Shown here one piece after another: positions 5,144-54,795 of a stretch of DNA of 64,000 bases (positions are counted from its first letter, which is position 1; every line of letters starts with the position of its first letter). The notes under the pieces are model-generated. The model saw only the letters and a program-made list of their open reading frames with translations, did no database searches and was not told the origin of the DNA. Position numbers and translations under genes: made by a program. The stretch is from Penicillus capitatus (taxonomy: Eukaryota > Plantae > Chlorophyta). The stretch is from positions 1,797,197-1,861,196 of the forward strand of contig OZ287694.1 in assembly GCA_965649825.1 (NCBI GenBank), in the 5' to 3' direction.

Positions 5144-5460
5144 GGTAAAAACGATGTGCCGTGGATATCCACGAACGTGTTCTTTCTGCGAGGATTCGCG
5201 GAAAACTCCGTCACGGAGGGAATGACTGCGAATAGGATACGAGGACGGATAACCGCTGCGACAGGTGTCTTCATAGCCCGGTTCTGACGTGACCCGGAAG
5301 CTAGCAGGTCTACCGCGTGTTATTACAATGTACCTGTCGACTGTTCTTTATTTCGACAGTGACGGACGCAGAACAAAACCGCCGCTCTTCCTCAAGATCT
5401 CCTCATTTCTTCCCAGTCAGTTGCGCAACGGCGACGCGTTGGCTGCGGTGTTCGACACGT

Positions 5461-5566
5461 GTCGGAAAGCATCAACAGAGATTTACAAAGACGACAAGCC
5501 GTTTCTCGGCAACGGCCATACACCAGCAAATAGGCTACTCATTCATCCAAGTCAAATCAAAATGAC
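5461..5566 (+). repeat. Diverged direct repeat, copy 1 (partner at 10558-10666)
   Basis: gtcggaaagcatcaacagagatttacaaagacgacaagccgttt...cattcatccaagtcaaatcaaaatgac aligns by eye to 10558-10666 at roughly 80% identity with one 3-nt indel. Confidence 0.75.
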
Positions 5567-5965
5567 ATACACACGACATGGGCCCACCAAATCCCTGCGC
5601 CTCCGAAAATCCCATACAAAGAAAACAAATAAACAAACAGAACGGAGGGATCAAATCACTTTCAGTTCCTATCATAGTATCGACGCAGTTGATGGATACG
5701 AACACGCCAGATGAGACGGCCAGTTTGCTTGTGTTTATGTCCCAAATGAAACGCGATTCTCTAGTGACACACTCACAAGGACCATCCCACAATGCAGAAA
5801 AGGGCTTCGGCGACCGGTGTTTTGGCGACATCTTCCACATGACGATCTTCAACTTCTAAGGGTCATCGACGGCGTGCCGCTTACGGAAACGACGTTCTTC
5901 GTATTCTTGATCCTTCCGAGTGTTTTCGATCGCCTTGCGGCTCCATTCTTGCAGCGTTCCCTTTG

Positions 5966-10666: not shown

Positions 10667-13004
10667 GAGGACACGACGACGAGCTAGGATTCCATGAAGG
10701 CGAATGGCAGTCGACTACGAGTAGCTAGACCTGCGTTTCGGTTTGTCCAGTTCATGCGAGGCGCGAGATGACTGGGATACCATACGGATACCGACAGCAG
10801 AAGCCTGTCGGCGTTTCCGAATTGGGAGAAGAAATGGACAGTGAAGACGGAGGAACTCTTACCGTGTCCTTCAGAAGATAGCCTGTGCAGAGCAAAGCGC
10901 TGAGGTGAAGGGTCGAACATCCGAGGGATCCATCCTTCGTGCGGATCGCAAACGCAAGTGAGAATCACTTTTGGTGCCGGAGAACGAATCGTATCTTCTG
11001 TTCTTTCACAGGCAACTCTGTCTGTGATTCCTCTGCGCCGAGGAGTCACGTTTTTGTGCGATGTCTTCAAGATAGCCCTGAGACCAGGAAACTCCCGTCA
11101 CGACAGATTTCAGAGAGTCGTGGGCGCGCTCGGGATGGAGCCATTAGTCAGATCACGACACGCGGCTCTCTGGTATTGGATCCGATGGATCTTACCAGAG
11201 TCTCGCCCTTTCATCCATTTCCTAGCCGGAGATGCACGATGTGTCAGCCGTGTTGCTCGGAACCCATGCCTGGACAGCTTCCGAAGCATCATGCGACCGC
11301 TCTCCTGCTTCGTTCTTCCCAACGTCCGTGTCCCCGGAAAGAAAACGATCGTCCTCCGGTGTCCGATCCCTCAGGACATACCGAACAGAGAAATGCTTCA
11401 AGCATCTGTCTAACTGGATCTGCGCGTTGAATGCAAACCGTTGAATGAAGATGAGATCGGATGAACCGTCGTGACGTTATTCTTCGGGTGGAGCATCCTG
11501 CCCTGTCTATGTCGTACGAACAGCAAAGCAGATCTCTCCGTTTGTCGATTTTCTCGCCGCAAACGCCCTTCGACGTGACTCCGAAGAGCGGCGGCGATCG
11601 AACAGAGGACGCATGCCGAAGCAGCCAGAAGAGGTTCTCTCTGTGAGCGCCTGCGGTCAGTGGGACGCTGCTCTGTTTGGCATAGATTGTCGAAACCTTG
11701 GCGGTATCTCGGTGTCAGATGTCGACCCCTGCCGGTCAGAAGATCCCTCGTCCGTTCGTCGTATCGGATGTGTTGCACAGCAGCTCCACATTACATTGGT
11801 AGGCGATGCCTCACAGTACAGGACCTGAATCGAAGAAAAGCTCCCAGATGACATCGAAAGCTTTCGATCTGTTCGTACCCCATCGCGCGACAAGAAAGGC
11901 GATCAAGAAACGGTCAATAAGCACGAGCTTGTCAAACGGCCACTCCGTGCTCTTAGACGGTGTGGGATCGTAGGTATGTTGTGAAGGATCTTGATAACGT
12001 GGCGCAACGGGTATGTGTTCTCTGGCGGCTGCCTTGACGGACTGCAGTCAACGTTTCTGGTACCGGATCCGCCTGAATAGGAGACGGAGCAACAGATGAA
12101 GGACGTAAAGGACGGCAGAAGATGACGCGGAGGGAGGATGCCGATTCAATGGACTGACTGTCTTTGCGAGGTGGGTGCACACAGCAGTGCATGCGGTGTG
12201 TGCGGCTGGAGGCCTATCCACATAAACTTCGAATTCGACTGCAGCTCAGAGAAAGTCGACCTAACTGCCAAATCGCCGAAAACATCAGCCACTAGGCGAT
12301 GCGACCAATCCCATCGAGACGACGGAGGCGAAGACGGGGGACTAGGTGAGGGTGAGCAAGAGAAGAAGCTTCCAGTGCCCATCGCACAGTGGCTTCTGGA
12401 GAAGCGGCACGCGATTTCCATGGAGAGCATTCCCATCGCTAGCATGAGACTCCTGACTGCAGGTGCCGGAAAAGCTGTCGAGAGAGCAGTGGACCATTCA
12501 CTCTGTGTCCTTGCAGCCTGTCAAGGTCAATCTGTCTACGCTGCCCGAGGCACGTGAGACCTGCATCTGGTCTTGCCCATCTCTGGTTCAGCCAGCCTCG
12601 TTTCCCGTATGATGTGACAGCTGTGTGTAAAAGAAGGTCCGATCCGACCGTCTGTTGTTTTCGGCGCCTGGCGACCGCTTCTACTGCGTTTCATCACGCT
12701 GCTTTTTGTTCGGTTCTTGCATTCTCGAAGGCATTGTGCTGTCTAGATTTTCATGGCCACCTGGCTGTCTTGTTCAGGACGGGTTCACGTGCTGAAGGGG
12801 CGCTTATGCCTTGTCAGAGGAAGCTCCCGTGCTTCGACGGGCGCTGCTCTGTGGTTCTGGTGACGGACTGACGCATCTGCCTAGAGAAGTCACGTCACAG
12901 CACGAGTATTTGAGGGGCAATCAGAACCGTGAATCGTCCAGCTGTGAACACTTGTCGAGTCTTTCGCTGTTATTGCTTTTGCTGCGCGGCACACCGGCGA
13001 CACA

Positions 13005-16000
13005 ATGAGCGACAAAAGCTCCGAAGGGATCTCCCGCGAAGATTACAAACCGACCCCTTTTCTTATCAGCAACATCAAGCTGAAGTTCAGTATCAAGGAC
13101 AAGGTCACGACCGTTCTCGCGACATCAGACTTCACACCCAACCCCGAGTACGAGGATGGCAGTGGCAATGATGGCAGCGCCAAGGATGGCAGCGACGAGT
13201 GCGCGGTTCCCTGCTGCGATGTCGTTCTCAACGGACACGCTGACATGACACTCGTATCCGTTAAAATCGACGATGTTGACGTTCTCGAGAAGGATAAAAC
13301 GTCGACGCCGAACAGTTTGACCCTGCTCAAGGTGCCAATCTGCGACTTCGTTTTGCAAGTGGAGACCGAAATCAAACCACAAGACAACAAGTCGAAGGAA
13401 GGACTTTACATGTCGGGCGGGACTTACACAGAGTCGACTAAAAAGTTGATTCAAGAAGGACTTCAAAAGTCGGGCGGGACTTACGACAGCGAGTCGATTG
13501 AAAAGTTGATTGAAGATGGATTTCAGATGTCGGTCAAGACTTACGACAAAAAGTCGATTGAAAGGTTGATTATAGCACTAGTTCGAAAGTCGGGCGGGAC
13601 TTACAACAGCGAGTCGATTGATAAGTTGCTTGAAGAAGAATTTCAGATGTCGGTCAAGACTTACGACAAAGAGTCGATTAAGAAGTTGATTAAAGAAGCA
13701 ATTCAAAATTCGGGCGGGACTTACAACGAGTCGATTGATAAGTCGCTTGAAGAAGAATTTCAGATTCCGGGCGGGGCTTACGACATAGAGTCGAGTGAAA
13801 AGTTGATAAAAGAAGGAATTCGCATTTCGGGCGGGACTGACAACAACGAGTCGATTGAAGAATTGATCGAAGAAGAAGGACTTTACATTTCGGGCGGGAT
13901 TTTCTGCACGCAGTGTTCGCCGGAAGGATTCCGCCGTATTACGTTTGCGCTCGATCGTCCAGACGTCTTGTCCACTTACGAAGTCCGCATTGAAGCCGAC
14001 AAGGAAAAGTATCCGGTTCTGCTGTCGAATGGCAACCGTACTGGACATGGTGATCTGGAAGATGACGATGGCCGTCATTTTGCTGAATGGCATGACCCCC
14101 GTCCCAAACCATGCTATCTCTTTGCCTTGGTGGCAGGCGATTTGAAATGTGAGAAAAATACGGTTAAGAGAACGAAAGGAGGCGATTTGGAACTGTGTAT
14201 CTACACAAAGAAACCCGACGAAGATGATGAAGAACACGACGAAGATGAAACCAAGCATGCCATGGCATCGCTAAAAAACGCCATGTTATGGGATGAAAAG
14301 CATTTTGGACGCGAGTATGACGATAAATTGACGATGTACAATATTGTGGTGGTCGATGATCTCAAGTTCGAAGCGATGGAAAACCAGTCGCTGAACATTT
14401 TCCAGTCGAGAAATCTGCTGGCATCCTCTAAAAAGAAGACAGATGATGGTTTTTTCTTAGCTCAAGCTACCGTGGCACATGAGTACTTTCACAGTTGGAC
14501 GGGAAATCGCGTCACTCTTCGAGACTGGTTTCAGCTGACGCTGAAAGAAGGACCTACCGTGTGGAGAGAACAGGTAAAGGATCAATCGGCACAAGACTCT
14601 GCACAACCATCACCAGCACCCGATGTTAACAACACGTGTGTGATGCAGGAGTTTTGTTCTGATCAGAATTCGCGTGTTGTCGAGCGCATAAAAAATGTGC
14701 ATAAATTGCGTACCGTAGTGTTCCCCAAAGAATCTAAACCCTCGGCGCATCCGATTCGTCCTCAGTCCTACACCGTGATAGATGACATTTTTAACCCAAT
14801 CACTTACCGAAAGGTTAGATGGAGATCCATCACGAATGTATGCGTGCGGGATCTGGAGTGAGATTTGAGTTTTAGGGTGCAGAAGTGATCAACATGTATC
14901 GCACGATCTTGGGCGATGTCGGATTCCGCAAAGGCATGGATCTGTACTTTGAGCGCTGCGATGGCAAGGCCGCTAGATGCGAAGACCTTCGCGATGCGAT
15001 GTCTGCAGCCAACGGCGACAAAGATCTGTCCACTTTGTTCAGGTGGTATGATCAGGCAGGAACGCCGAATGTCAAGATCAAGACGACCTATAACGAAACC
15101 GATCACACGTACACATTGCATGCGACGCAGCAGACGCCGCCGACAGATAAACAGCCGGAGAAGATCCCTGTGCTCATTCCTCTCCAAATGGCTCTCTTGG
15201 GAAAAGATGGCAAAGAGATGCCACTCAAGTTGAGAGCCGATCCGGTCACTCAGGTCGATCAGGCCGATCCGGTCACTGAGATTGTTTTGGAGTTCGATAC
15301 GGCAGAAGCGACATATGTTTTTGAAGATGTGCCCTCCAAGCCAGTCCTTTCCATTCTCCGTTCCTTCTCGGCTCCAGTGAAGCTCGAGATCGAAGGACAG
15401 ACGGAAGAAGATTTACGTTTCCTTGTTAAAAACGACAGTGACGGGTTCAATAGGTGTCCCTACTGACAGAATGATGTGACGTTTTCGATCCGGTGTGCTT
15501 CTCAGGTGGGATGCAGCTCAACGTCTGTGGAAAGGTATCATTAAGAAGCTCTATGAAGAAGCCCAGAAAGCAGGCCTCGATGCGCCGGAGGGCGAGGTCC
15601 CTCAGGACCTCATCAATATCTACGAATCCGTCTTGAAAGATGAAGATGAAGATGGACAGTTTCGCGCGCTGATTCTGGAACTTCCAAGCAAAAAAGAAAT
15701 GGCCAGCGAGATCCTTGATGTGGATAGAAAGCTGCTGGACAAAGCGATAGAGCATTTTGAGAAAGAATTGGGGACGCGTCTAGAGAACACCTTTCTCGCA
15801 GTCTGGCAAAAGAACATGGCCAAAGGTAATGCATCTTTTATGCATGGATCTCTCACGACAAGCGCTCCTGTAGGTGAAAAATATGAGTTCATTCCTAGCC
15901 AGGTGTCCAAACGCGCCATGAGGGGGATCTGCTCGTCCTATTTGGCCGCGGCCAAGAATACGATTCTTGCCAATCAACTCGAGGATGCCTTTTTAAAAGC

Positions 16001-17489: not shown

Positions 17490-18896
17490 TCAAGTGGATG
17501 AAGAAGGCGCCTGCAAGTCAGACAAGTCCTCATCCGGTTTGCCCGCCTTGTTTTTCAAAAGCGGATCTTCGACTCTCGCGATAAGCAGAGCCGCGACGAG
17601 ATAGGCTCCCCCGACCATAGGAACGGCAACATTGGATCCCAATGCATCCGTCACTCTTCCGTAAATCATTGGAATCACAATGCCTCCAATCGTCGCTGCT
17701 GAGCTTAACATAGAGGCAGCCACAGAACGCGCCGATGCTTCGCAAGACATAGTTGCCAGCGCCAACACATAGCACCCGCAAACACGCACCGCACTTATAG
17801 CTCCTGTCAGCACCAGAAATCTCAGGAAAAACCCAGTACGTTGTATTCCTATCAAGGAAATCAACATCACGCCTCCAACAGCATACACCGCAGAAGCGAC
17901 TCGGGGTCGATTGCGTACATTCAAACGACGTATCCACAGGGAAAGAAATCCAGAGACGAGAAACGGGATGGCTGTCATAATGATCGCCAGCGTTGCACTG
18001 CTGTGTTTGGAGCCGCACGTCTTGGTGTCTTCGTCGTCTTCGTAGAGCATGTTCTGAATGATGAGTGTTGCCCAGAACATGAGGGTATTGTTCACGCCAG
18101 AAACGATAAGGAAGCTGAATGCGCATACTCTCCACGTTCCATTGGAGACAACGCGTTTCACCGCTTCCCAAAACGATACGTCACACTCGTTCTGGTGGCC
18201 CTCTTGACTCTCGGCAATCCACTCTTTCTCCGCCGTTTCCAGGAAGGGAGCTGTCTGGGGAGAGGCTGGCAAAAAGAAATACACTAATACGGCATACAGC
18301 ATCGGCATGATGCCCTCGACAACGAAAAGCAATCGCCACCCCTTGACGTTCACGTAGGGGCCAAGGCTCAGCAAACCTGCAGAGAGAGGAGACGAAAGCG
18401 GCATCGAGAATGAAATGGTTCCGATAATCACACTGTATGCATTCGTAACATGTTCTGGAGGGTAGAACACGGGGATAATATACCACATTGCTGGAAACGT
18501 GCCACCCTCGGCAATTCCCAAAACAAAGCGAAGGACATAAAACTGCATGGTGTTCTGAATAAACCCCAATGCCGCAGCAACACTGCCCCAAGCAAAGAGG
18601 ATGAAAGAGATCCATGCAGGCGCGCCGAAGCGCTGAAGCATGACGTTGCCTGCCACTTGCGACAGCAGGTAGCCGACGTAGAACAGACTGACCCCTTTGC
18701 CGTAGTCTTCGTGGGTCAGCTTCAGGTCATGACAGAGGTCGTTTGCCGCGTAGCCAATGTTACTGCGGTCGACATAGGACAGGAAGGTGACGCCGGCAAG
18801 GAGAAGCAGAAAACGGCGGTCGAGTTTCCGAATCGTCGAACGAGCGGCGTCCTCTGCTAGAGGAACGTAGGCCACTTGCGACGTTGGCGACCGCAT
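17490..18896 (-). CDS. MFS transporter, anion:cation symporter (TtuB/allantoate permease-like) family, paralogue 1, intronless
   Basis: RKLDRRF, LSYVDRSNIGYA, LFYVGYLLSQVAGN, FYVLRFVLGIAEGGTFP; about 12 hydrophobic segments in 468 aa. Confidence 0.9.
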   Translation of the reverse strand: MRSPTSQVAYVPLAEDAARSTIRKLDRRFLLLLAGVTFLSYVDRSNIGYAANDLCHDLKLTHEDYGKGVSLFYVGYLLSQVAGNVMLQRFGAPAWISFILFAWGSVAAALGFIQNTMQFYVLRFVLGIAEGGTFPAMWYIIPVFYPPEHVTNAYSVIIGTISFSMPLSSPLSAGLLSLGPYVNVKGWRLLFVVEGIMPMLYAVLVYFFLPASPQTAPFLETAEKEWIAESQEGHQNECDVSFWEAVKRVVSNGTWRVCAFSFLIVSGVNNTLMFWATLIIQNMLYEDDEDTKTCGSKHSSATLAIIMTAIPFLVSGFLSLWIRRLNVRNRPRVASAVYAVGGVMLISLIGIQRTGFFLRFLVLTGAISAVRVCGCYVLALATMSCEASARSVAASMLSSAATIGGIVIPMIYGRVTDALGSNVAVPMVGGAYLVAALLIARVEDPLLKNKAGKPDEDLSDLQAPSSST

Positions 18897-19299
18897 CGGG
18901 AAAAACGTTTGCGGACAACAAGACGGCGGATCAACCGAATCTTGACGCGGCGACGGTGGCAGTCGCTCTCAGTATACGATTCTGTTCGTCTGTGGCTGTC
19001 AGCGCGTGCGCGATCACGTCCCGTCATTCAATGTCTTGTCGACGTCGTCTGTCGCCAGTCGTAACGTCACATCCGTCACACGAAAGAATACGTGAACATG
19101 TCAGTCGTGCCTGAATGGTTACACAGAGATGCGACAGACAGTTCGTCCGACCTGAAAGCATGGTAGAAACCAGAAACTACAAGGGAATCTTGAAACCGTA
19201 GATTTTGATCGATCGATCGATCAACTGGATCCATCCAGACATCTCTCGAGGACATGTCGACCATCCAGCAGCGACAAACGAGGATTCGTGCGGCACTCT

Positions 19300-20800
19300 C
19301 TGCTGCATTTGTCAAGAGCACCACTCGATAAGGGTCTGTTTTTCGTCTTCCTAGATCCCTTGGTTGAAACCCCATCAACAAGTTGGCTGGCGACGTCCTG
19401 AGAACCGAATGCTGCGCAGTTCGGACTGCATAGAGTGCGTGACGTAGACTAAGATCCCAATCTGCCTTGTTCGCGACGTGTGCTCTGATAGCCTCTATTA
19501 TAGTTCGGTTGCACCTCTCGACCATCCCGTTGCTTTTAGGTGTCAGTGCCCCCGACGTCATGTGCCTTATCCCATTATTGTCCTTTTCCTTGACACATTC
19601 CACCTCCAAGCAGTAGTCCCTTTACGAGAGCGGACCATCGAGCTAGCCTTCCTGACAGATCATCCTGTTTGAGTAACCAGAGTAGCGGTCTGTGATCTGT
19701 TCCGAGCTTCACGGTCTGCCCTTGAATCAGGTGCCGGAATTTCTTGAGCGCGCACACCAGTAACTCGCGTTCCACGGTGCTGTAATTCTTTTCGGGTTTT
19801 GAGAGCTTCCTGCTGAGAAACTGGATCGATGTAACCGACCAGGCCCATCCCTTTGCTGCAGAACAGCGCCGATACAAACTGCGCTGGCGTCGACTGCTAC
19901 TATCCAAGGTCTGTCAAAACGAGGTTCCGCCAAAGTCGTCATTGCCGAGAGTACCGCCTTCAATTTTGCGAACGCGTTTTCAGCCGCTTCCGTCCACTGA
20001 AACTTTGATGACTTCCGCATCATCTCAGTCAATAGAACTGCCAGCTCTGCAAACTGAGGTACCATCTTCCGGTAAAACCCGATCAGACCGAGGAAGGAAG
20101 AGATCTCCTTCTTGCCCTTGGGCCCTCGCCCATGCTTGAATGACTGAAACCTTCTCTGGACCTGGATGTAGTCCTTCGTTATCGCAGACAAACTCGAGTC
20201 GAGCGCTTGGATAGCCAAACTTGCACTTGGATGGGTTGAGTGAGACGTTATGGGCTTCGAATGCTTCGAGTACCTGACCCAAGAGACTTAGGTGTTTCTC
20301 CCATTCCTTTGTGCCAATGCCAATGTCATCAAAGAAGTTTGCCACTGCTGCATCAGTGTTGTTTCGAGCACGGATTTTTCACGACACAACATGTTGCAGT
20401 TGGGCATAGACTGCTGGTGCACCCTGGAGACCGAATGGCATCACTAACCACCTGAGCCGCCCAAAAAGTGTGAAGAACGCAGTCTATCCTGCCGACGCAC
20501 GATCCATCTTCACGCAGAAGTACCCTCGATACCTATCAACGACGCTATAGAATTGGTGCTGTTAACGCATACACGAGCGGCCGACATCAGACTGAAACTT
20601 AGTAAACACGAACGAACCTCATCTAACAATCGCATCAAATTGACCAAGGCCTTCACAGGTGCCCACTTAGATCCTCGCAGCACTGTTCTAGGTTCGGTAC
20701 GGGCCAAACGGTGCTTACGGTCTTCGCGTTCCACTTCGCGTAGTTCACGCACATCCTTAACTGTCCGTCTTTCTTCCGGGCAAACACGAGGTTTGCTCCT
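19300..20800 (-). mobile_element. Second degenerate Ty3/Gypsy remnant (RT, RNase H, C-terminal integrase fragment)
   Basis: VFARKKDGQLRMCVNY, FFDDIGI, LNPSKCKFG, FLGLIGFYRK, VDASAVCIGAVLQQ, KNYSTVERELL, GTDHRPL, LARWS, then PKSNGMVERCNRTI...SPANLLMG. Many frameshifts; integrase core missing; no LTR seen. Confidence 0.9.
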
Positions 20801-21637: not shown

Positions 21638-22999
21638 CTATAAAAGGGGATCTTTGACGAGCATAATGAGCACAGTCGCAATCAGAAAGAAGCCTCCGAA
21701 CAATGAAATAGAGATATTCGTGCCCACCACATCCATAAGCTTGCCAAAGATCATTGGAAACACGATGGCGCCAATCGTCGCTACCGAATTGTACAGAGAG
21801 GTCGCCACAGAATGCTCCGATACATCGCATGACGTAATCGCCAATGCCACCACATAGCAGAAGCTAACATACCCCGCAGTGATCGCTCCTGTCAACAGCA
21901 ACAGCCGGACTACAAATACGATGTGTGATGTTCCGATCCACGAAATCATCAACGCGCCGCCAACTGTGTAAACGATGGCGGCGGCTCGGGGTCGATTCTG
22001 TACATTCAAGCGACGCGTCCACAGGCAAAACACTCCGCAGACGAGATAGGGAATGGCTGTCATAATGATGGCCAGTGCTGCGCTGCCGTGTTTGGAGCCG
22101 CATGTCTCGGTGTCTCCGTCTCCGTCTCCGTCTCCGTCTCCATAGAGCATGTCTTGAATGAGGAGTGTTGCCCAGAACATGAGGACGCTACTCATGCCAA
22201 AGGCAATCACGCAACAGGCTGTGCACACTCTCCATGTTGCGTTGGCGACAACTCTCTTCATGGCTTCCCAGAACGATACGTCACACTCGTTCTGGTGGCC
22301 CCCTCTACTCTCAATAATCCACTCTATCTCCTCCGCCGTCAAAAACGGAGCTTTTTCGGGAGAAGCTGGCAAGAAGAGGTACACTAACACGGCATACAGC
22401 ATCGGGATGATACCCCCGACAACAAACAGCAATCGCCATCCCTTGACGTTTACGCTGGGGCCGAGGCTTAGCAACCCAGCAAAGAGAGGCGATGAAAGCG
22501 GCATTGAAAATGAAATGGCGGCGAAGATTACGCTGTATGCATCGGTGACATAATCTGGCGGATAGAACATAGGTATAATGTACCATATCGCAGGAAACGA
22601 GCCGCCATGGGCGATTCCCACAGCAAAGCGCAGAACGTAGAACTGCTTCGCATTCTGAATAAACCCCGTTGTCGCGCCGACACAGCCCCAGGCAAAAAGG
22701 ATAAACGAAATCCACGCCGGCGCGCCAAAGCGATTAAGCATGACATTGCCTGCCATTTCTGACAGCAAGTAGCCGACATAGAACAGACTGACCCCGTTGC
22801 CGTATTCCTCGTGGGTCAGCTTCAAGTCTTGACAGAGGTCGTTAGCTGCGTAGACGACGCTGCTGCGGTCGACGTACGACAGAAAAATGACACCGGCACA
22901 CAAAAGCAGAAAACGACGGTCGAGTTTCCGTATCGTTGGAGCGGCGACATCTTCAACGAGTGGAGCCTGCGAACTTTGCGAATCCGTTTCGTCGTTCAT
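21638..22999 (-). CDS. MFS transporter (ACS family), paralogue 2, intronless
   Basis: Clearly homologous along its length to 17490-18896 (RKLDRRFLLL, LSYVDRSSVVYA, LRFAVGIAHGGSFP). ORF track starts at 23095; the ATG at 22999 (MNDETDS) matches paralogue 1 better. Confidence 0.88.
   Translation of the reverse strand: MNDETDSQSSQAPLVEDVAAPTIRKLDRRFLLLCAGVIFLSYVDRSSVVYAANDLCQDLKLTHEEYGNGVSLFYVGYLLSEMAGNVMLNRFGAPAWISFILFAWGCVGATTGFIQNAKQFYVLRFAVGIAHGGSFPAIWYIIPMFYPPDYVTDAYSVIFAAISFSMPLSSPLFAGLLSLGPSVNVKGWRLLFVVGGIIPMLYAVLVYLFLPASPEKAPFLTAEEIEWIIESRGGHQNECDVSFWEAMKRVVANATWRVCTACCVIAFGMSSVLMFWATLLIQDMLYGDGDGDGDGDTETCGSKHGSAALAIIMTAIPYLVCGVFCLWTRRLNVQNRPRAAAIVYTVGGALMISWIGTSHIVFVVRLLLLTGAITAGYVSFCYVVALAITSCDVSEHSVATSLYNSVATIGAIVFPMIFGKLMDVVGTNISISLFGGFFLIATVLIMLVKDPLL
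22112..22141. repeat. (GTCTCC)5 hexamer microsatellite encoding a GD repeat in MFS paralogue 2
   Basis: gtctcc repeated five times; translates as GDGDGDGD on the minus strand where paralogue 1 has EDDED. Confidence 0.9.
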
Positions 23000-23318
23000 T
23001 GGACCCCAAGACACGCGCCGACAGCAAAGAATAATCACGGCGAGCAATGATGCGAAGCGTTTTTTCACTTGGCGAAAATCGATAGCGTCGTTCACAATCG
23101 AATTGTCCGTTGTACATAAGTGTGATGATTCATACTAGTCAGTCTTATCCGTCAAATCTTTTGACGTGACAGCATCTTTCTCCGTTGAGGCAATGAATAA
23201 CGGATTCAGAAAGAGTGACAAACTGCACAGTCGTCACTTGTTTATCATTTACGTCCTGCAGCGACAATTATTTGCCTAGCGACGGCCAACCGTGCTCTCT
23301 ACTGCGTTCTTGCCAGAT

Positions 23319-42191: not shown

Positions 42192-44082
42192 ATGGAATCC
42201 GACGACCATCGCAAATCGATTTCCGAATTGCGCGCCGAACGCGACCGTCTCCACGAAATGCACAAAGACGCGAGCTCACGTCTCCCCGACGGAGGGGCGA
42301 ATCTCAAACACCGCATCGCCCGTATCGAAGAGCTCATTCAACAGAAGAGAGAACAACGCGCTAAAGTACAGTGCCCGTCTTGTCGATGCCCTCCCTTAAC
42401 GTGGAGACAGCGAGCTGGATTCCAGCGTTGGAAGACGACGGAGAGTCGAGAAGTCGTCGACGTGCAGATGGAAGGAGAGGTGTGTGCGTTGGATACGGTC
42501 GATACGGGATCACCGTTGGCTAACGTGAGCGTTCTTTTGTCACTGCCGATGACGCCAAAGTCGAAAGTGGAGCCGTTGGCGACGATTGGACGTCCCGTCA
42601 TGACGAGAAGCAAGAAAAGAGTGAGATACGCCCGTCGAAAGAGTGAGATGCCAAACCGTTTCCCACAGATGAAGCTGGAAGTGGTGGAGTTGCTGTCAGA
42701 CACGGAGATGGAGACAGAAGAGAGTCCGATGCCCATTTCTCCTCCAGTCGACCACCCTTCCGACATCGTGCGGCTCCTCGCTGTACATCCACCGCCGCCA
42801 TTTCGCCAAAGTGTGACATTTGTGTGAGATGTGATCAGAATCAACGGATCGTATATCCGCGGCACGGCGGCCGAGGATCCGTCCAGATCACTCCGTCCGA
42901 TCTGGCGCGTTTGGAACCGGATGAATTCATCAACGATACCTGCATCAATTTGTACATCAAGTGAAGAGTGCGAGGCAAAAGAGTGAGAATCGAGGTGAAT
43001 GGATATAGGAAGATCGAAATGGAGAGTAAGGGTATGGAACGGTGTTACATCTTTCGAACGTATTTCTACTCGAAGCTCGTGGAATCGACGGACACTTCCT
43101 CCAGCAGCTATCAGAAATGGACAAAGGTATGGGGAGGCCTCTTATGTGTGACCATAGAAATGGAGCTGTGCTTTAGGATGTGAATATCTTTGACTACGAC
43201 TATCTGTTTGTGCCAGTCTATGACTGCTCGCACTGGTCGCTGGCCATCGTGTGTTTTGCTGGGAGGATTGGAGAAGACGTCACCCACGAGCGACTGTTCA
43301 CTCCCTGCATCCTACACCTCGATTCTGTCGAGCGTCTCTTCTCACTCTTTCTCACACTTCCTGCTCAAAGCGTATGTATGATGTGACAGAGAGCGTGGGT
43401 CATTGTACGGCGGAAGTGGGTAATGTACTGCGATCGTATCTGCAAGCGGAATGGAATCTAAAAGTGTGACCTTGTGTGAGATGCATGTTTCATAGCGTTG
43501 TGATGTGACAGGTGGTACAATATCCGCCGATACTCAACAGTCGTAACCTCCCAGCCAAGCGGATCGCCAAAATCCCCCAGCAGCACAACTCGGCGGACTG
43601 CGGGCTCTTTCTCCTCGCCTACCTCGAGTACTTCATTTTCGATCTACCTGATCATCTCGACCACCGAAGACTACACGAGCTCAAGAGTACGGTCACATCA
43701 CAAAGTGTGAGATCGCAGACATCTGTCTGCACTAGATAAAGACCGGCCGAATTTTCTGACGTCTCGGTGGCTGAAGTCCATCCACGTGGGGCTTCTTCGA
43801 AAAGAGCTGCTGCATTTTATGTACCATCTCTATCTGGAGCAGCTGCCGGATGAGCATCCCGCCTTCGATATCCTTTTTCAGAAGCTCAGTGCATACGACG
43901 CGAGCGAAACACCCAAGTCACATCACTCTTGCATCTCACTCTTTTCGATCACATAGGTCTTTAGGTACAAAACTGCCGCACGGTTGCGTCAAGAACGACA
44001 GACGTCGCATCTGTCCTCGGCACAAAGACGGACATCGACATTCGACAATTGTGGCCATAACTGCCGCTCCGGTGGAAGATAA
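42192..44082 (+). CDS. ULP/SENP SUMO protease (peptidase C48), OTS/ULP2-like
   Basis: N-terminal RLPDGGANLKHRI coiled coil; ITPSDLARLEPDEFINDTCI, FRTYFYSKL, NIFDYDYLFVPV, catalytic SHWSL (His), HLDS (Asp), QQHNSADCG (Gln/Cys). Confidence 0.9.
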
Positions 44083-44184
44083 CAAGCGCAGGGGTGCGAT
44101 ACATCAACGGCAGGCTGTCTATGTCTGATACAATGACATCCATATTCGATAGTGGATAGAAACGCTGTAATAGAGATCGAGATT

Positions 44185-44541
44185 TCATGCGGCGGAGGAG
44201 TTGCCGTCGATCGATACGCCATCGGCGCGGAGCGACGTGACGAGATGATCGAAATCGACGTTTTCTAGGTAGTCAATCTCAGCATCGTAGTTTTCCTCCT
44301 CCAGATTCAGGCCTTCGCGTTGCGCCGCCGGCCAGCCTAGCCGCCAAACGTCGCATCACGGAGGAATGACAGAACAGATACCGCGCAGAGCGATGCATGC
44401 ACGATCGTAGGCTCGCGCCGCATCGACGCCCGTGACGAAATGCCCGAGATAACATTCGCCATCGCCCGTCCAGATACGCGCTCTCCAGTAGCGCCGGTGA
44501 CGATAGACGCCTTTGAATGGACTGGACGCCTCGGCGACCAT
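44185..44541 (-). CDS. Small AP2/ERF-domain protein
   Basis: SSPFKGVYRHRRYWRARIW...YLGHF...AARAYDRACIALRG | ...LNLEEENYDAEIDYL, with one ~45-nt GT-AG intron; upstream exons possible. Confidence 0.8.
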
Positions 44542-44669
44542 GACGACGATGTGACGTGTCGATGCGACGCGGTCAACTCGTCAGCGCCGTTTCGTCTTCC
44601 TTTTCCACTGCGTGATGTGACGTGTCGCGCTTTCCTCCATGACGTGACGTTTGAAGCCGTGCGTGTTCG

Positions 44670-47918: not shown

Positions 47919-48093
47919 ACCATCCTCCCACTCTCCCCCGCGTCACATCGCTTTCAGCCAAGCGATGAAGCGCGATACATTCTTGTGGCCAATACCGGAC
48001 TCGACTTTACACAAGGACATCTGTTTACAGTTTCTCCAGAACAAGTCTATCAGGGAGATGGATCGATCTGTCCATAGAGTGGAAGCCAGTGCC

Positions 48094-48581
48094 TTAGGTG
48101 GTGAACGATTCCCCACAGCCACAGCTTCCCTTCGAGTTCGGATTGCGAAAGACAAACTCCTTTCTGCAGCACCCCATCATGCGTTGCCCAATAAACGGAC
48201 GCTCTCTACTTTAATCGGTCCTCCACGAAATCCATCGTCGTTCCCAGAACATGAATCAGCGCGCCCGGATCGATGAGCATTCGAATGCCTTTCTCCTCAA
48301 CCCGCTCATCAAATTTCCCGGGACTGTTGGCGTAGTTCAGTGTGTAGGTCAGTCCATTGCATCCCCGGCGTTTGACGCCGAGGCGTAGGTACTCCTGACA
48401 GAAGTGTGATGTGACAGCAGCGATGGAATGGTCAGGCACATGCCTTCTGTCGTGTTTGTAGCAGCGATCGAATGCGTTCGGCGGCGGAATCGGTGAGATG
48501 GATGGCAGCCTTGACTGGTTTCAGAACACGACGCGGCTGTTTCGCCGTTTCTGCGAGAGCGGCGAAGAGACGACCGACCAT
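48094..48581 (-). CDS. ISCA1: Mitochondrial iron-sulfur cluster A-type carrier (ISCA1/IscA)
   Basis: [17 protein letters not shown] | [20 protein letters not shown]...TMDFVEDRL | [21 protein letters not shown]-stop; first intron is GC-AG (48395-48443, 49 nt). Confidence 0.93.
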
Positions 48582-48584
48582 TAC

Positions 48585-50274
48585 TCAAAACATCAAACGG
48601 CTGACATCAGGATGCATCACAATGATACCATCATCTCGTGCGTCACGTCCCATCGTACAGCTACCCGAACGTACAAACGCGGGTGGATTCGAAGAGGCGC
48701 CGACATCAATCGGACGTTCGCGGAATTGACGTTCTAATCGTCGCATCTTTGCCTTGAGCGCTTCGATTTCGCGAAGGACGTTGTCTGAAGCGGCGGTGGT
48801 TAGAAATCCGGATCCTGTCCCGTCGATGGTCGGCAGCGGCGGCGGTGGCGGCGGAGGGTCGTCCATATTGTTCAGCGTTGCCTCTCTGTACTGTGACAGC
48901 GACGGATGTGACGTGCATTGCGTTGTTCTGTAATCACATGTCATTGCTTCAAAAGAGTGAGACATCTGGCGGTCCATATCCAATTTCAGTCGGTGGTGCA
49001 GATCCGTGTTCTCTTTTCGCAGATGCTTGATTTCTTCCCGCAACACGGCCCGTTCCGTTCTGGGATGCGCCGCCGTTCCCTCCAGAGACGCATCGTAGAC
49101 GATGCCTTTCGCCTTTTGCGCGTAGAGCAGTGTATTGAGTGTCTCTTCCTGATGGATGTTGCACGGAGAGCAGCACGTGATCATGAGCGTCAGTGCATGA
49201 CCACTCAATCCATCTTTGAGAAGCTTGGTCAGAACGGAATCGCGATAGGCGATGTGCACAGCGTGATGTGACGTCGACAGCGAGGCGATCACTTTGCCAA
49301 GGCAGAACAGACTCTTGTTGATCTTGGCCGTCTCGCGACGGTTCTGATCATGATCCTTTAGCCGTTCACTCCCAGCCAGATCCACAAACATCAACTTCCC
49401 GCCAGCTTCCTACAACAAACGTCAAATCACTGCCGCCGCCACGGTCCGTCATATGAGCAAGACGCTGGATTGGAGGTCGATGGTGAAGATGGTATGACTA
49501 CGACTCGAGCGGCCGTTGCGTTTATGACATCCCACTCTCCGCGTCTGCATACCGTGCTCAATCACCTCCATCACACTTTTCCCGTACACCGCACAAAAGA
49601 GTGAGATACCATGTGGACTGTGTCCATGGCCTTGCACGGGACCGTCTTGGCACCGTCCACATAGAATCCTCGATCGGCAGACCATCGAACGGCGAGTCTC
49701 GCATCGTGCGATGCCAGTAGATCGTACACCGATTCGTTATAGACCTCCACATACGTCACATCCAATCGAGCGTCCACCGCATCCTGCAAAGTGTCCAGTA
49801 CATAACGCGCCGCATACTGAATCACTCCTTCCTGTCCATCCTACACAACAGTCCTCAGTGCCCAACGAGAATCCACCGTTTCGCGACAAACGGGCGATCC
49901 AGTCATGGTATAGGTCTTGCCCGAACCGGTCGGTCCGTAGGCCAAGATGCAGACATGGTATCCGGTCATCGCTGCGTTGAGCAGCTGGTAGATGCCGAAG
50001 GCTGACAAGACGTCTTCTTGCATGGCCTCTCTGCCAAGACAGGCGTCAAAGCGCATCGTCCGTGCGAAGGGACGTCCGTAGGGCGATGCCAAGAGAACCT
50101 CCATGAAAAGACGTCAGGTGATGACGTCGGTATCGCGCAGAGGACTCTAAGGGCCTGCGGATCGTCCTCGTCCGTCTCGACGATTTCATGACGTCTCTCG
50201 CGGATCTCCATCTTCGTCGGCGGTCGGATACGGACACCGACGCGAATTCGACGCTCGTCATCGCGGGACGTCAT
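48585..50274 (-). CDS. Kinesin motor protein, KIF12/kinesin-16-like
   Basis: IRVGVRIRP, AYGPTGSGKTYTM, YVEVYNESVYDLL, LAVRWSADRGFYV, SSRSHTIF, FVDLAGSERL, INKSLFCLGKVI, IAYRDSVLTKLL, short coiled-coil tail. Confidence 0.92.
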
Positions 50275-50346
50275 GATGCGACGTGCGATCCGTCGTCGAT
50301 GGCGTTCAAAACACGCGACGCATGGACGCTGTCACATCCATCGCCC

Positions 50347-51420
50347 TTAAAAGCATTCGAGCAACGATTTGTGATGATAGGCCGAAAAAAGCAAAGCATT
50401 GTGCAGAATATGCGCTACGAGGGGAAACATGAGATTCTCCCTGGCAGTGACGGTGAGGACGCCCCACACGATTCCCGAGAACAACATTGCCAGAAACTGC
50501 CGAGTCGAGGCAATGGGTCGACTCACGTTGTCCGCCAGGGCGGCCAGCAGCGAAGCCATCGGGAAGCCGTATATGAACTCGACCGATACAACGACGATAC
50601 CACGGTAGAGGAGCTCCTGGAGCAGCGGCACAAAGAGGACGCCCGAAAGGTAGATCCAGATCATCGTCGCTCTGCGGTCCACCTTATCAATCGAATCCAT
50701 GTCGTCGGTGATGAACGGAACGAGCCATTCGACGTGGGGTTTCTGCAGTTCGGAGACAACGGTCCGCGTTCGGAACACCAGGAGCCAGTGCACAGCGGCG
50801 GCGGCGGCGGCGAACATGGCGGCGACGGGGAACAGCAACGGGTGGTAGGCGAAAAGGAAGGTGTGCAGTTGGAATGGCCCAAAGGAGAGCACCACATAAA
50901 GAACGGCGAATCGTATCGCCAGGGTGATACCCCGCCGAATGCGCCGAGGTTTTCGAAGTTCGATGACGCGCTGCGTCCAGTTCCAGAGAAGGAACGCCGC
51001 CGCCAGAATCCGAAACTGCGCTTCGCTCATCGCATCCAAGGCATTGTAAGACATGGCGATGGCGCCGAAGGTTATGCCGATGACGATAAAGGTGATCCAC
51101 AGACGCGAGAATGCCGATTCCAAACCATCTGCCAGAGTGGGGGCTGCGGGCGTGGCATCTGGGTCCGTGACCGATTCTCCGTCTGGATCTTGCTTGGCGT
51201 CATCTGTTGTCTGGACGGTGTCCTTATCGATCGGTTCATTGATGGAGACCGGCGGGTCGCAGTTCGCGACGAGCGATACCGTGGCGTTGCGTTTTGGCCG
51301 AGGGATGTGACTGGCCGTCGCGCTGAGGTGGGCGCTGCGTTTGGCTGTGGACCGTGAGCGGGAGAGCGATGCGGTCGAGGCGGAGCTGACGGGAACACGT
51401 CGTGACAGTCGCGTCTGCAT
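50347..51420 (-). CDS. CPBP (CAAX protease/Abi)-family membrane protein, probably plastid-targeted, intronless
   Basis: Ser/Arg-rich N-terminus, multiple TM segments, PLLQELLYRG (EExxxR-like) and AHILHN (HxxxN-like). Confidence 0.7.
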   Translation of the reverse strand: MQTRLSRRVPVSSASTASLSRSRSTAKRSAHLSATASHIPRPKRNATVSLVANCDPPVSINEPIDKDTVQTTDDAKQDPDGESVTDPDATPAAPTLADGLESAFSRLWITFIVIGITFGAIAMSYNALDAMSEAQFRILAAAFLLWNWTQRVIELRKPRRIRRGITLAIRFAVLYVVLSFGPFQLHTFLFAYHPLLFPVAAMFAAAAAAVHWLLVFRTRTVVSELQKPHVEWLVPFITDDMDSIDKVDRRATMIWIYLSGVLFVPLLQELLYRGIVVVSVEFIYGFPMASLLAALADNVSRPIASTRQFLAMLFSGIVWGVLTVTARENLMFPLVAHILHNALLFSAYHHKSLLECF

Positions 51421-51711
51421 CTCAACACGATGACGACGCGAACGGAGCGACCCACTCGGCGACACGCAATCGAGGTATAGGGATCGACAGATGGTGCTCA
51501 TCTGAACGCCAAGCCAGCTGTCACATCGACCTCGAAAACAAGCGACCGACGCAGCGAGCAGACTCCGCGACGCTAGACGCCAACGCGACGATTCTAACCA
51601 GTCCCTCCCTACCCTCCGCTGTAGCGACGCCTCACTGCTTCGTGTCCGGGTATGGACTCGGTGTTTTGCGCTTAGGAAACGAAGGGCGGAAAGCGGTCGC
51701 TGCGGATGGCC

Positions 51712-51783
51712 GTCACATCAGGCGCATCAGATTGGGCCACTCGCGGTCGCATCAGGCGTATCGGATTGGCCACTCGCGGTCAC
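51712..51783 (+). promoter_or_regulatory. 33-34 bp tandem duplication with ATTGG (reverse CCAAT) boxes in the CPBP/nitrate reductase divergent intergenic region
   Basis: gtcacatcaggcgcatcagattgggccactcgcg / gtcgcatcaggcgtatcggattggccactcgcg / gtcac; lies 180-250 nt upstream of the NR ATG. The repeat is seen directly; a regulatory role is inferred. Confidence 0.45.
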
Positions 51784-51960: not shown

Positions 51961-54795
51961 ATGGCTGCGACACTTGCTCAGAAATCTTTGGGAGCTCCGT
52001 TGGAAAAACGTAGGACGCGTGGTTCTGACGAAAACGCCTTTTGATCCACGTGTGTTTTTAGCGCTCGTCAAAGGGACGGAAGAATGGGAACGGCATCTGC
52101 CGGCAGAGAAAATTGATGACCGCGACGTGGGGACGCCCGACGGCTGGATTCCGCGGAATCCGGTGTTGCTGCGCCACACGGGCGGCACCCCTTCAACTGC
52201 GAAGCGCCGCTTGACAAACTAACGGACGCCGGGTTCATCACGCCCGTGTCGATGCACTACGTCCGCAACCACGGCGCGGTGCCGAAGATCGATTGGACGA
52301 GCCATCGCATCGAGATAAGGGGACTCGTCGGGCGACCGATGTCCCTAACGATGGAAGACCTCCTAAAGTTCCCGACCTTGACGATTCCCGTCACGTTGGC
52401 CTGCGCGGGAAACCGCCGCAAAGAAACGAACATGTTTAAGAAGACAGTTGGTTTAACTGGGGTCCAGGAGTAACGTCATGCTCCTATTGGACAGGTCGGA
52501 AAGGCAAAGGGTAAAGAGTGAGATCTGATGAGGGTTTTGGCTTAGGTGTGAGATTGTGTGATATTTTGATGTTTGTTGGGACAAAGACGCCAGACGAGGG
52601 AGCGAATCATGTCTGCTTCCGTGGGCCCACGGGAGAGGTGCCCAAGGGAGATGACGGCTCTTACGGGACGTCGATCAACTTGGGTCACGCTCTGGATCCT
52701 TCCAACGAAGTCATTCTGGCCTACAAACAGAACGGCCGATGGCTGACGCCCGATCACGGCTTCCCGATTCGCCTGGTCGTACCGGGCTTCACGGCTGGGC
52801 GCATGGTGAAGTGGCTCAGCGAGATCACAGTGTCCGACAGAGAGAGCAACAACTTCTACCACTACAACGACAACCGCGTCCTTCCTCCCCACGTGGACGA
52901 AGCCCTGTCCAAGGAAGAAGGTGAGCAGAGAAGCGCCCTTGTGCACCTGACTGAGGTGATGGGCTGCTGTTGCAGGATGGGTCTATAAGCCTGAGTTCAT
53001 CGTCAATGAGCTCAACATCAACGCCGCCGTGTCCCGACCGTGTCACGATGAGACACTGGTGCTCAAGGCGAAGAGTCCTTACACCGTGAAGGGATATGCC
53101 TACACGGGTGGCGGCCGCAAAGTGATCCGCGTGGAGGTGTCGTTAGATGCTGGCAAGACGTGGCGACTGGCTGAGATCGACCGTCTAGATGCCGAGACGC
53201 CGTTTGGCAAATCCTGGGCGTGGAGTTTTTGGCGACTGGAAGTGCACCCTTTTGATTTTCTGTACGCGGATGAGATGGTGATCCGTGCTGTCGACTCCGC
53301 ACAGAACTTCCAGCCGGATCAATTGACCTGGAACATGATGGGAATGATGACGAACTGTCACTTCAGAGTCCGCGTACATAAGAAGATGTGTGACGATGGC
53401 ACACTCTCTGTTCGATTCCAACATCCAGCGCCGCCAGAGGTAGGTGCTCTGGGGAACGTCGGATGGAGAGAGGAGGAATCCAAGGCCCGAGAACAGGAAG
53501 CACCTCCCGTAACCGTCGCACCTTTGGCCAGACTTTCGAGTCTTGCCCCTATTAAACTTCCATCATCTATATCAGACCTTCCAGGTAGCTTCTCAGTTCT
53601 ACCGAGTCTGTTCTCACTTTATGTCATGTTTAGTGATAAGGACGTATACGATGGGAGAGGTGGCGGCGCACATAACCGATGGATCGTGTTGGTTTGTGCA
53701 CGAGGGGAAGGTCTATGATGTGACAACTTACCTGGATGATCATCCGGGCGGCGCCGAGTCTATTCTGTTGGAGGCCGGAGGCGACGCGACGGTCGAATTC
53801 AACGCCATCCACTCGCTCAAAGCGAAGTCCATGCTCGAGAACTATTACATCGGAGATTTGGAGGAGTCTGAAAAGAAGGCCAAAAAGGAAGTGCCTGTGG
53901 GACGGGAACCGGTCGTCCACGTCCGAAAGCCGTCGCAAGTGCCCGAGATCGTGGAAGCTCCTTCAGCGCTCGACCCAAAGGCGAAGATCCGTTGCGAGTT
54001 GACAGAGAGAGTCGAACTAAACCACAACACACTGCTCCTGCGTTTCGCCCTGCCGTCTCCCGATCAGAAACTGGGACTGCCAGTCGGACAACACATGTAC
54101 CTCTATGCAGGTCTGCATCTCCCCCTCTTCTCATCTGGCAGTGAATTCGTGTCTGTTTTGCAGATATCCAGGGAGAGGTGTGCATGAGAGCATACACGCC
54201 GACGTGCTCCGACGAGCTGGGCTTCTTCGACCTGGTCGTCAAGATCTACCGAGCGAACGAGCATCCCGATTTCCCAGAGGGCGGCAAGATGTCTGCCTTC
54301 TTGGACAACATGAAGATCGGCGATACGATCAGCGTCAAGGGACCCACGGGTCATTTCAAGTACATTGGCAAGGGAGAGTACGTCAACAACCGACGTCCAG
54401 GAAAGGCGAAGCAGCTATCTATGATCGCGGCGGGCACGGGCATCACACCGATGTACCAAGTGATCAAGGCCGTTCTCAACGATCCCTTCGACGAGACCAA
54501 TATTAAGCTCCTCTATGTCAATCGACACGTGGAGGACATCTTACTTCGGGAGGAGCTGGATCAGCTGGCCCTCCTGCATCCGAACTTCGATATCTGGTAC
54601 ACGCTCACCGCTCCTCCTGCCGACTGGTTCTTCTCCACCGGTCGTGTCAACCTGGAAATGCTGAAGCGCACGCTCTTCCCTGTGTCTAAGGACGGTCTGG
54701 TCCTCATGTGTGGGCCGCCAGCTATGTGTGACACTGCTTGCAAGCCGAATCTGGAAAAGCTAGGGTGGGACAAGACCCAGATGATGGAGTTCTGA
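51961..54795 (+). CDS. NIA1: Assimilatory NAD(P)H nitrate reductase (Moco-dimer-cyt b5-FAD domains) with two apparent single-base deletions
   Basis: DDRDVGTPDGWIPR, HPFNCE, HYVRNHGAVP, TLACAGNRRKE, PDHGFPIR, NFYHYNDNRVLP, WNMMGMMTNC, heme domain HPGG/FNAIHS, RAYTP, MIAAGTGITPM, CGPP, MEF-stop. Frame breaks at ~52181 (ACG GG- CGG) and ~52452 (GGT TT- AAC). Confidence 0.95.

Follow-up and report, generated by a model that had tools for sequence, protein, structure and literature searches.

Polycistronic nuclear mRNAs have been described for the green algae Chlamydomonas, Chromochloris and Auxenochlorella (Gallaher et al., 2021, PMC7896298; Duenas et al., 2025, PMC11892635). Here, colinear open reading frames (ORFs) for functionally unrelated proteins are separated by short spacers, introns are allowed and the colinearity is kept between species. 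The median distance between the ORFs amounts to 40–260 nt across the published loci (PMC7896298, PMC11892635) and to 40–183 nt for curated bicistrons, in comparison to more than 2.5 kb for ordinary colinear pairs (PMC11892635). The first ORF has a median length of 291–357 nt in the curated set and of 444–600 nt in the first survey (PMC11892635, PMC7896298), its start codon lies in a weak context, and the observed/expected ratio of AUGs in front of the second ORF is about 0.5 or less (PMC11892635). Leaky scanning has been shown experimentally for such loci (PMC7896298, PMC11892635). The discovery of these nuclear polycistrons is recent, and leaky scanning, the sole mechanism demonstrated, demands short and AUG-poor upstream ORFs. 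A clean test case is provided by three genes in a 64,000-nt stretch of Penicillus capitatus DNA (the window), which encode a CPBP protease (Rce1-like, CAAX protease family), a KIF12-type kinesin and the A-type iron-sulfur carrier ISCA. The trio is spaced like a polycistron, yet its upstream genes are long and rich in AUGs. The reading favored here, held with somewhat less than even confidence, is that of three independent nuclear genes, each with its own start region, whose transcription units overlap.

Other known systems share features with this trio. The operons of nematodes and tunicates (C. elegans, Ciona, Oikopleura), in which a spliced leader is added onto the downstream cistrons, consist of same-strand genes with spacers of 0–100 nt and carry AG-ending motifs 5' of the ORFs. 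Overlapping transcription is reportedly found in compacted eukaryotic genomes. In such genomes, as those of microsporidia and nucleomorphs (see PMC6009652), the spacers are too short for untranslated regions (UTRs), promoters and terminators, and the mRNAs start inside the upstream gene and end in or past the downstream gene; by analogy, the same would be expected at the trio. Finally, some viruses use TURBS (short for termination upstream ribosomal binding site), as studied for caliciviruses (PMC6393290) and influenza B (PMC3035654) and reviewed more broadly (PMC10275272). Features in common with the trio, or with its counterpart in a relative, are a stop and a start that are at most 3 nt apart or overlap as UAAUG, a conserved region of 45–100 nt inside the end of the upstream ORF and a UGGGA pentamer.

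All features of the locus lie on the minus strand, and their coordinates were obtained by reading the sequence and by locating junction strings. The three genes are intact and arranged head to tail. The CPBP coding sequence (CDS; 50347-51420) is a single exon for 357 amino acids plus the stop and ends with ...TGC TTT TAA, of which the TAA occupies 50349-50347. After a spacer of 72 nt (50346-50275), which contains one copy of GATGTGACAGC (50338-50328) and three ATGs, the kinesin gene (48585-50274; 497 amino acids) starts with the ATG at 50274-50272. Its frame ends with ...TTG ATG TTT TGA GTA ATG GTC, the TGA being located at 48587-48585. The GTA at 48584-48582 is all that separates this stop from the ISCA ATG at 48581-48579, and in the window both ORFs share one frame. 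ISCA (48094-48581) terminates with TAA at 48096-48094. Both gaps given in the earlier note, 72 nt and 3 nt, are exact to the base, and its argument that same-strand spacers of this length leave no space for a 3' UTR, a promoter and a 5' UTR holds.

The identities proposed for the three proteins were borne out by Pfam matches (PF02517, PF00225 and PF01521, respectively) and by intact spliced models. For CPBP, the Rce1-like domain (PF02517, E = 4.8e-6) covers residues 279–370 of the 384-codon ORF that opens at 51501, and the CPBP stop is therefore a natural end. The sole CPBP homologue found, P0241, is 71% identical over 100% of the query. S, R, A and T are frequent in the N-terminus of CPBP, which may resemble a plastid transit peptide.

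The kinesin is assembled from five exons (50274-50146, 50098-49892, 49840-49610, 49565-49464 and 49409-48585), which are separated by introns of 47, 51, 44 and 54 nt. PF00225 matches the ORFs of four exons (E = 5e-16 to 3e-33), covering profile positions 41–327, and the translation displays the P-loop GPTGSGKT, switch I SSRSH and switch II DLAGSE. The motor starts 8 residues past the ATG at 50274, and no in-frame ATG is present further upstream. The closest homologues are 42–44% identical, and the KIF12 subfamily label is taken only from homologue names, namely 'Kif12 type' or KIF12 matches at 40–44%.

ISCA is a housekeeping mitochondrial protein. In the window, it is encoded by three exons (48581-48444, 48394-48210 and 48163-48094; 130 amino acids) and matches PF01521 Fe-S_biosyn (E = 1e-6). 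Aligned with 12 ISCA proteins of green algae and plants (124–131 amino acids), the model requires no gaps, and C58, C122 and C124, the three conserved cysteines of the family (Cx...CGCG motif), are invariant. Since the alignment is gap-free, with the initial M in register in every homologue and 'MV' at the N-terminus of 10 of them, the ATG at 48581 is the true start of ISCA. The two introns measure 49 nt (GC-AG) and 46 nt (GT-AG). The donor and acceptor of the first (48395-48443) read GCATGT...CAG, with GCATGC...CAG as counterpart in the relative introduced below (L012, 13090-13141), and the conserved GC donor identifies it as a genuine GC-AG intron. The best homologues of both kinesin and ISCA belong to the Viridiplantae; together with the N-terminus of CPBP and the TGTAA past several ORF ends (see below), this points to a chlorophyte-like green alga.

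The same arrangement is present in a close relative, for which two ENA contigs of one sample are available, L012 and L013 (analysis ERZ26696514, ctg303793 and ctg303802). The CPBP homologue P0241 lies on L012, which has a length of 1.18 Mb; L013 differs from L012 by 0.8% and probably represents the other haplotype. L012 is colinear with window positions 55293-40317 at about 82–84% DNA identity, and both share one gene order, in which a divergent nitrate reductase gene is followed by CPBP, kinesin, ISCA and a convergent EDM2-like gene. The convergent gap between the stops of ISCA and the EDM2-like gene amounts to 175 nt, the divergent gap to nitrate reductase to at most about 550 nt. Since the arrangement recurs in two contigs of the relative, it is not an accident of assembly. 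The spacer between CPBP and kinesin is exactly 72 nt in L012 as well and 93% identical in comparison to about 76% for the pooled introns (binomial P = 1.5e-4 against a neutral rate of 0.24). Furthermore, the C-terminus and stop of CPBP are kept, and the same splice sites, including the GC donor, yield intact proteins, a kinesin of 498 amino acids that is 84% identical and an ISCA with 123 of 130 identical residues. Synteny, which the earlier note named as a check, thus holds for one close relative with its two contigs or haplotypes and does not extend to Coccomyxa, Bryopsis or Trebouxia: kinesin and ISCA are not adjacent in Coccomyxa viridis and Bryopsis, and in Trebouxia sp. C0006 they lie on different contigs. 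Metagenomes scanned with the last exon of the kinesin gene or with DNA of the conserved junction gave no match, and exact searches for the spliced ISCA and for two variants of the CPBP start revealed no recorded transcript or contig of the organism itself.

On L013, a long terminal repeat (LTR) retrotransposon of about 6 kb with aspartic protease, reverse transcriptase and integrase (3511-8927) is inserted between nitrate reductase and CPBP, which is not present on L012. The run from CPBP to ISCA is unaltered on L013 despite this insertion.

At the junction between kinesin and ISCA, a run of four T is shortened to three T in L012, and through this 1-nt deletion the kinesin ends with ...LMFE followed by TAA. 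This TAA overlaps the ISCA ATG by one A (TAATG at 12950-12954), which places ISCA outside the kinesin frame, and L013 shows the same. The abutment of stop and start is thus conserved, and the shared frame is specific to the genome of the window. This bears on the suggestion that readthrough of the TGA yields a kinesin-ISCA fusion protein. In the window, the shared frame and the separation by the TGA and just one sense codon are in line with such a fusion. A shared frame is expected by chance in 1/3 of cases, though, the deletion breaks it in both contigs of the relative, and the conserved N-terminal presequence of ISCA, with 'MV' as the start of most homologues, presumably has to be free for import. 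As a conserved mechanism readthrough is thereby refuted, and on the whole it is regarded as extremely improbable.

The earlier note had also considered a possible 40-nt intron near the 3' end of the kinesin gene. It loses its acceptor in the relative, where AG is changed to GA, and was discarded. An alternative intron of 74 nt (GTACGT...CAG) in the same region is conserved, yet none of the six verified introns (44–54 nt) is as long or as well conserved, and this alternative is unsupported. With or without the 74-nt intron, the kinesin stop lies at most 25 nt from the ISCA ATG.

The evidence that carries the favored reading comes from the pattern of sequence evolution. Window positions 51900-47600 (minus strand) were aligned to L012, and identity per feature, identity in sliding 40-nt windows and differences per codon position were determined. 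Identity is about 50–65% in the intergenic DNA upstream of ~51560 and 52–62% in the intergenic DNA past ISCA, 67–89% in the introns, 79% in the CPBP CDS, 87–93% in the kinesin exons, 86% in the last 115 nt of the kinesin and 93% in ISCA exon 1. Three blocks of 90–100% identity are present, each of ~150 nt and spanning about -100 to +50 of an ATG: 51541-51383, 50368-50229 and 48681-48522. The same type of block thus lies at the 5' end of all three genes, including CPBP, upstream of which only a divergent gene is located.

The block at the CPBP start (51383-51541, 90–97% identity) includes one GATGTGACAGC (51527-51517) and an in-frame ATG at 51501. This ATG lies 81 nt 5' of the annotated CPBP start with no stop in between and would add 27 residues. 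Positions 51501-51421 are 95% identical to the relative with four differences in 81 nt, one synonymous and three nonsynonymous; a leader and an N-terminal extension are both possible.

The block at the ISCA ATG (48522-48681, about -100 to +60 and 85–100% identity in 40-nt windows) contains GATGTCAGC (48609-48601), a UGGGA (48652-48648) and stops in all three frames less than 20 nt from the ATG, and represents a candidate start region or reinitiation element. It overlaps the end of the kinesin ORF, and here the substitutions do not follow the pattern of a protein-coding sequence. In the kinesin motor, the differences at codon positions 1/2/3 number 17/11/57 with a synonymous:nonsynonymous ratio of 51:26. 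The coiled coil (48799-48700, 33 codons) behaves likewise with 3/1/11 and 8:5. For the last ~36 codons (48588-48699), the numbers are 7/5/2 and 1:10, which differs from the preceding coiled coil (Fisher P = 0.0025). At the same time, divergence in these codons is 0.13 per site and lies below that of introns and third positions (P = 0.003). On the other side of the junction, the first 24 ISCA codons show 3 differences in 72 nt, and their third-position divergence is 0.04 versus 0.26 in the rest of ISCA. Since the coiled coil is under normal purifying selection and the last 36 codons display the 1:10 pattern, these codons are constrained as DNA or RNA and not as protein. Judged by its substitutions, the 3' part of the kinesin ORF is under selection as a nucleic-acid element.

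One candidate source of this constraint, an antisense ORF that spans the junction (plus strand, 48472-48729), was rejected, since the 1-nt indel of the relative would shift its frame. A scan for bacterial promoters and terminators, a method not applicable to a eukaryote, gave nothing useful.

This pattern would be explained if each gene keeps a short start region, a core promoter and/or a 5' leader, of ~150 nt centered on its ATG. The start region of the kinesin would then occupy the 72-nt spacer together with the final CPBP codons, and that of ISCA the final ~100 nt of the kinesin ORF. As a functional protein, the kinesin would effectively end at the coiled coil (~48700), with the ORF running on through the ISCA start region to the stops just 5' of the ISCA ATG. 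A 36-codon run stays open by chance with a probability of 0.21. The inexact C-terminus of the kinesin, where UGA-GUA-AUG is converted into UAAUG by an indel of 1 nt, is as expected if the exact C-terminus is immaterial. Furthermore, CPBP needs a start region of its own because the only gene upstream is oppositely oriented, and the other two blocks look alike. With regard to the promoter inside the kinesin CDS that the earlier note listed for ISCA, this option fits best on account of the conserved, non-protein-like blocks around the ATGs, which as start regions, together with the positions of transcription starts and 3' ends, are deduced from sequence.

Further support comes from the AUGs in front of ISCA. 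Scanning ribosomes that enter from a cap 5' of the kinesin or of CPBP cannot reach ISCA, since 42 and 19 AUGs, respectively, lie in their path. ISCA being a housekeeping protein, an mRNA of its own would be the simplest route. In line with this, nine assembled green-algal ISCA transcripts are monocistronic with 5' leaders of 72–218 nt, in which neither an ATG nor an upstream ORF that reaches into the start is present. CPBP, kinesin and ISCA also appear to have no functional link or shared pathway and probably reside in different compartments. The close neighbors on both sides of the trio, with gaps of 175 nt to the EDM2-like gene and at most about 550 nt to nitrate reductase, likewise fit the favored reading.

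TGTAA serves as the poly(A) signal of chlorophytes. Between 51500 and 47000, the sense strand contains just two TGTAA pentamers (48007-48029, minus strand), 65 and 83 nt past the ISCA stop, which likely act as a shared poly(A) signal. The second is kept in position and context in L012 (TGTAAAG, 70 nt past the stop), and a sense TGTAA is also present 0–155 nt past the stop of five other ORFs in the window. The signal is informative but not strict: nitrate reductase has none within 2.9 kb in both species and must use another 3'-end signal, and L012 has one TGTAA inside the kinesin CDS. On the simplest reading, RNAs that start at CPBP or at the kinesin would run on to the poly(A) site of ISCA. 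Since no room is left for terminators, transcripts of an upstream gene probably read into the downstream gene and end past ISCA. Long RNAs with kinesin and ISCA may thus coexist with a short ISCA mRNA that would do most of the ISCA translation, and long reads are predicted to reveal a mix of monocistronic and multi-ORF RNAs.

Several observations weigh against independent start regions. The 100 nt 5' of the ISCA ATG contain six ATGs (four in the relative) versus none in the leaders of other algal ISCA mRNAs; a scanned ISCA leader must therefore be shorter than ~10–25 nt or tolerate short upstream ORFs. No TGTAA follows the CPBP or the kinesin stop until after ISCA in either species, and for this reason the kinesin mRNA likely carries the ISCA ORF and would be structurally bicistronic. 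The juxtaposition of stop and start survives ~18% divergence and an indel, which termination-reinitiation would predict and independent promoters would merely tolerate. The over-represented 8-mer GATGTGAC, which is found in two of the blocks, did not mark transcription start sites in a crude test; the first ATG past it opens a long ORF for 11 of 46 copies in comparison to 11.7 in random controls. Finally, general genome compaction does not explain the trio because the rest of the window is not compact. Here, the trio differs from microsporidia and nucleomorphs, whose genomes are compact throughout: its compaction is local and lies amid retrotransposons and multi-kb gene-poor stretches, and its genes carry several spliceosomal introns.

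The strongest competitor of the favored reading takes up the conserved junction itself. Here, the mature mRNA would be bi- or tricistronic, and ribosomes that terminate at the end of the 497-codon kinesin ORF would restart at the ISCA AUG, aided by a conserved TURBS-like element. A distance of 3 nt between stop and start in the window and the UAAUG overlap in L012 and L013 mirror the arrangement of stop and start in influenza B M1/BM2 (PMC3035654) and in calicivirus VP1/VP2. The ~100 nt before the kinesin stop are conserved as nucleotides without protein constraint, and a TURBS of 45–80 nt within an upstream ORF would look alike (PMC6393290). In both species, a UGGGA, the pentamer of motif 1, is located 67 nt 5' of the ISCA AUG, and all three frames are closed by stops just 5' of this AUG. 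Moreover, TGTAA is absent from the kinesin stop to the end of ISCA, the AUG-rich approach is harmless to translating ribosomes, though not to scanning ones, and polycistronic mRNAs of green algae are documented (PMC7896298).

On the contrary, reinitiation past long ORFs is the exception in cells, and even in viruses its efficiency is low, with ~10% for BM2 (PMC3035654); a housekeeping protein would be poorly served by it. A UGGGA occurs in such a stretch with a chance of 8%. In TURBS, motif 1 is complementary to 18S rRNA and is kept single-stranded by a motif 2*/2 stem, and the window has no supported stem of this kind. RNA structure at the junction is no better than that of shuffled controls (z = -0.25), most of the UGGGA is paired in the consensus fold, and this two-sequence fold includes just one compensatory pair, two sequences giving no usable covariation. 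The same type of block is present at the CPBP ATG without an upstream ORF, so that a block of this type needs no reinitiation, and the 72-nt gap between CPBP and kinesin is not a reinitiation geometry. A scan for other stop/ATG pairs a few nt apart was uninformative, as such pairs in arbitrary frames are common in GC-rich DNA. In contrast to the viral cases, the locus is cellular, its upstream gene is spliced, the UGGGA could be due to chance and the candidate is known here from sequence alone. Taken together, reinitiation is considered unlikely, albeit with a weight that should not be neglected. For the more specific proposal of a conserved cellular cassette, in which the spliced kinesin mRNA also delivers ISCA and the restart is guided by the 100-nt element, our expectation is slightly lower still. 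If true, a TURBS-like device in an algal nuclear gene pair would be novel and would provide a second route to eukaryotic polycistrons besides leaky scanning.

The bi- or tricistronic mRNA proposed by the earlier note is thus conceivable in its kinesin-ISCA form through termination-reinitiation, while the form known from green algae, one capped mRNA in which leaky scanning past a weak start gives access to the downstream ORFs, lacks two of the hallmarks. In favor of the latter, the gaps of 72 and 3 nt between the colinear ORFs fall within the range of curated bicistrons, the colinearity is kept in the relative and a single TGTAA region is located past the last ORF. The upstream ORFs measure 1074 nt (CPBP) and 1494 nt (kinesin, spliced CDS) versus published medians of 291–357 nt, and are thus 3–5 times as long as green-algal medians. 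They are also AUG-rich instead of AUG-depleted, with observed/expected ratios of 1.65 for CPBP, 3.4 for the spacer and 2.0 for the kinesin versus ~0.5 or less in the published loci. In front of the ISCA start, CPBP contributes 19 AUGs, the spacer 3 and the kinesin 42, and several of these 42 are in good context. The start contexts, read without a genome-wide consensus, are gagATGc for CPBP, atcATGa for the kinesin and gtaATGg for ISCA; with an A at -3, the kinesin AUG is not in an obviously weak context. Since the upstream ORFs are long and AUG-rich, leaky scanning cannot deliver ribosomes to ISCA, and this explanation is very improbable.

Only a little more credit is given to a polycistronic precursor that is cut into monocistronic mRNAs, for example by leader trans-splicing after GATGTGACAG and GATGTCAG, each followed by C, 5' of the respective ATG; this, too, is improbable. 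Acceptor-like motifs ending in AG are located 15–55 nt 5' of the ATGs at 51501, 50274 and 48581 and are kept in the relative, and the intercistronic distances match those of operons with almost no spacer. To our knowledge, no spliced-leader trans-splicing has been described for green algae or plants. The acceptor-like motif occurs in 46 copies on both strands, coding sequence included, and is not site-specific; unlike in spliced-leader operons, it is a genome-wide 8-mer and not a dedicated acceptor. Neither a spliced-leader RNA nor another relevant Rfam family was found in the 64-kb window with Rfam (gathering thresholds) and a tRNA scan, and a permissive Rfam scan of the locus gave a single irrelevant match with E = 0.66.

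The 8-mer itself, GATGTGAC, has the consensus T-GATGTGAC-(G/A)(T/G), and its 46 copies compare with 4.1 +/- 2.0 in shuffled sequences. In the relative, 23 copies in 21 kb amount to a similar density. The sites are found in intergenic DNA, introns and exons, are often paired and contain AUG-UGA, a start followed by a stop. At the locus, copies are located at 51719, 51527, 50338, 49762 and 47949 on the minus strand and at 51304, 49265, 48905 and 48408 on the plus strand.

The probability not assigned to any of these readings is left for explanations beyond those listed. If the start regions are indeed buried as favored here, promoters and 5' ends would lie inside the final codons of the preceding gene within an otherwise non-compact genome, which bears on the annotation of algal genomes and on the definition of promoters. 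If reinitiation applies instead, cells would use a virus-like termination-reinitiation after a long ORF. Irrespective of this, the DNA constraint on the kinesin tail and the junction that survives an indel define ~160 nt (48681-48522) as a target for mutation or as a compact expression element.

The surroundings of the trio illustrate that its compaction is local and not genome-wide. Other same-strand gaps in the window are ~500 nt long, as between the alanyl-tRNA synthetase-like and STAG-like genes and between the latter and the next ORF, and the window contains remains of LTR retrotransposons as well as multi-kb stretches without long ORFs. Retrotransposon remains are present at 5969-9101 (minus strand), with Pfam matches to reverse transcriptase (7059-9101) and integrase (5969-7372). 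A further reverse transcriptase/integrase fragment, recognized by translation only, lies at 19079-20287 (minus strand) between paralogous MFS transporter genes (17493-18968 and 21641-23134).

On the plus strand, an M1 aminopeptidase gene harbors an in-frame tandem repeat (13398-13877) of 60-nt units in 8 copies with 74% matches, and periods of 120 and 237 nt are detected as well; the units read '...SGGTY..ESI.KLI.E..' and are inserted between the N-terminal and catalytic domains. The nitrate reductase gene that diverges from CPBP (51974-54795, plus strand) encodes a complete assimilatory enzyme with Mo-co, cytochrome b5 and FAD/NAD domains and contains several short introns. Finally, the region 43141-44655 has no long ORF, is 75–97% identical to the relative and includes four copies of GATGTGAC; it may represent short exons that escaped annotation or conserved non-coding DNA.

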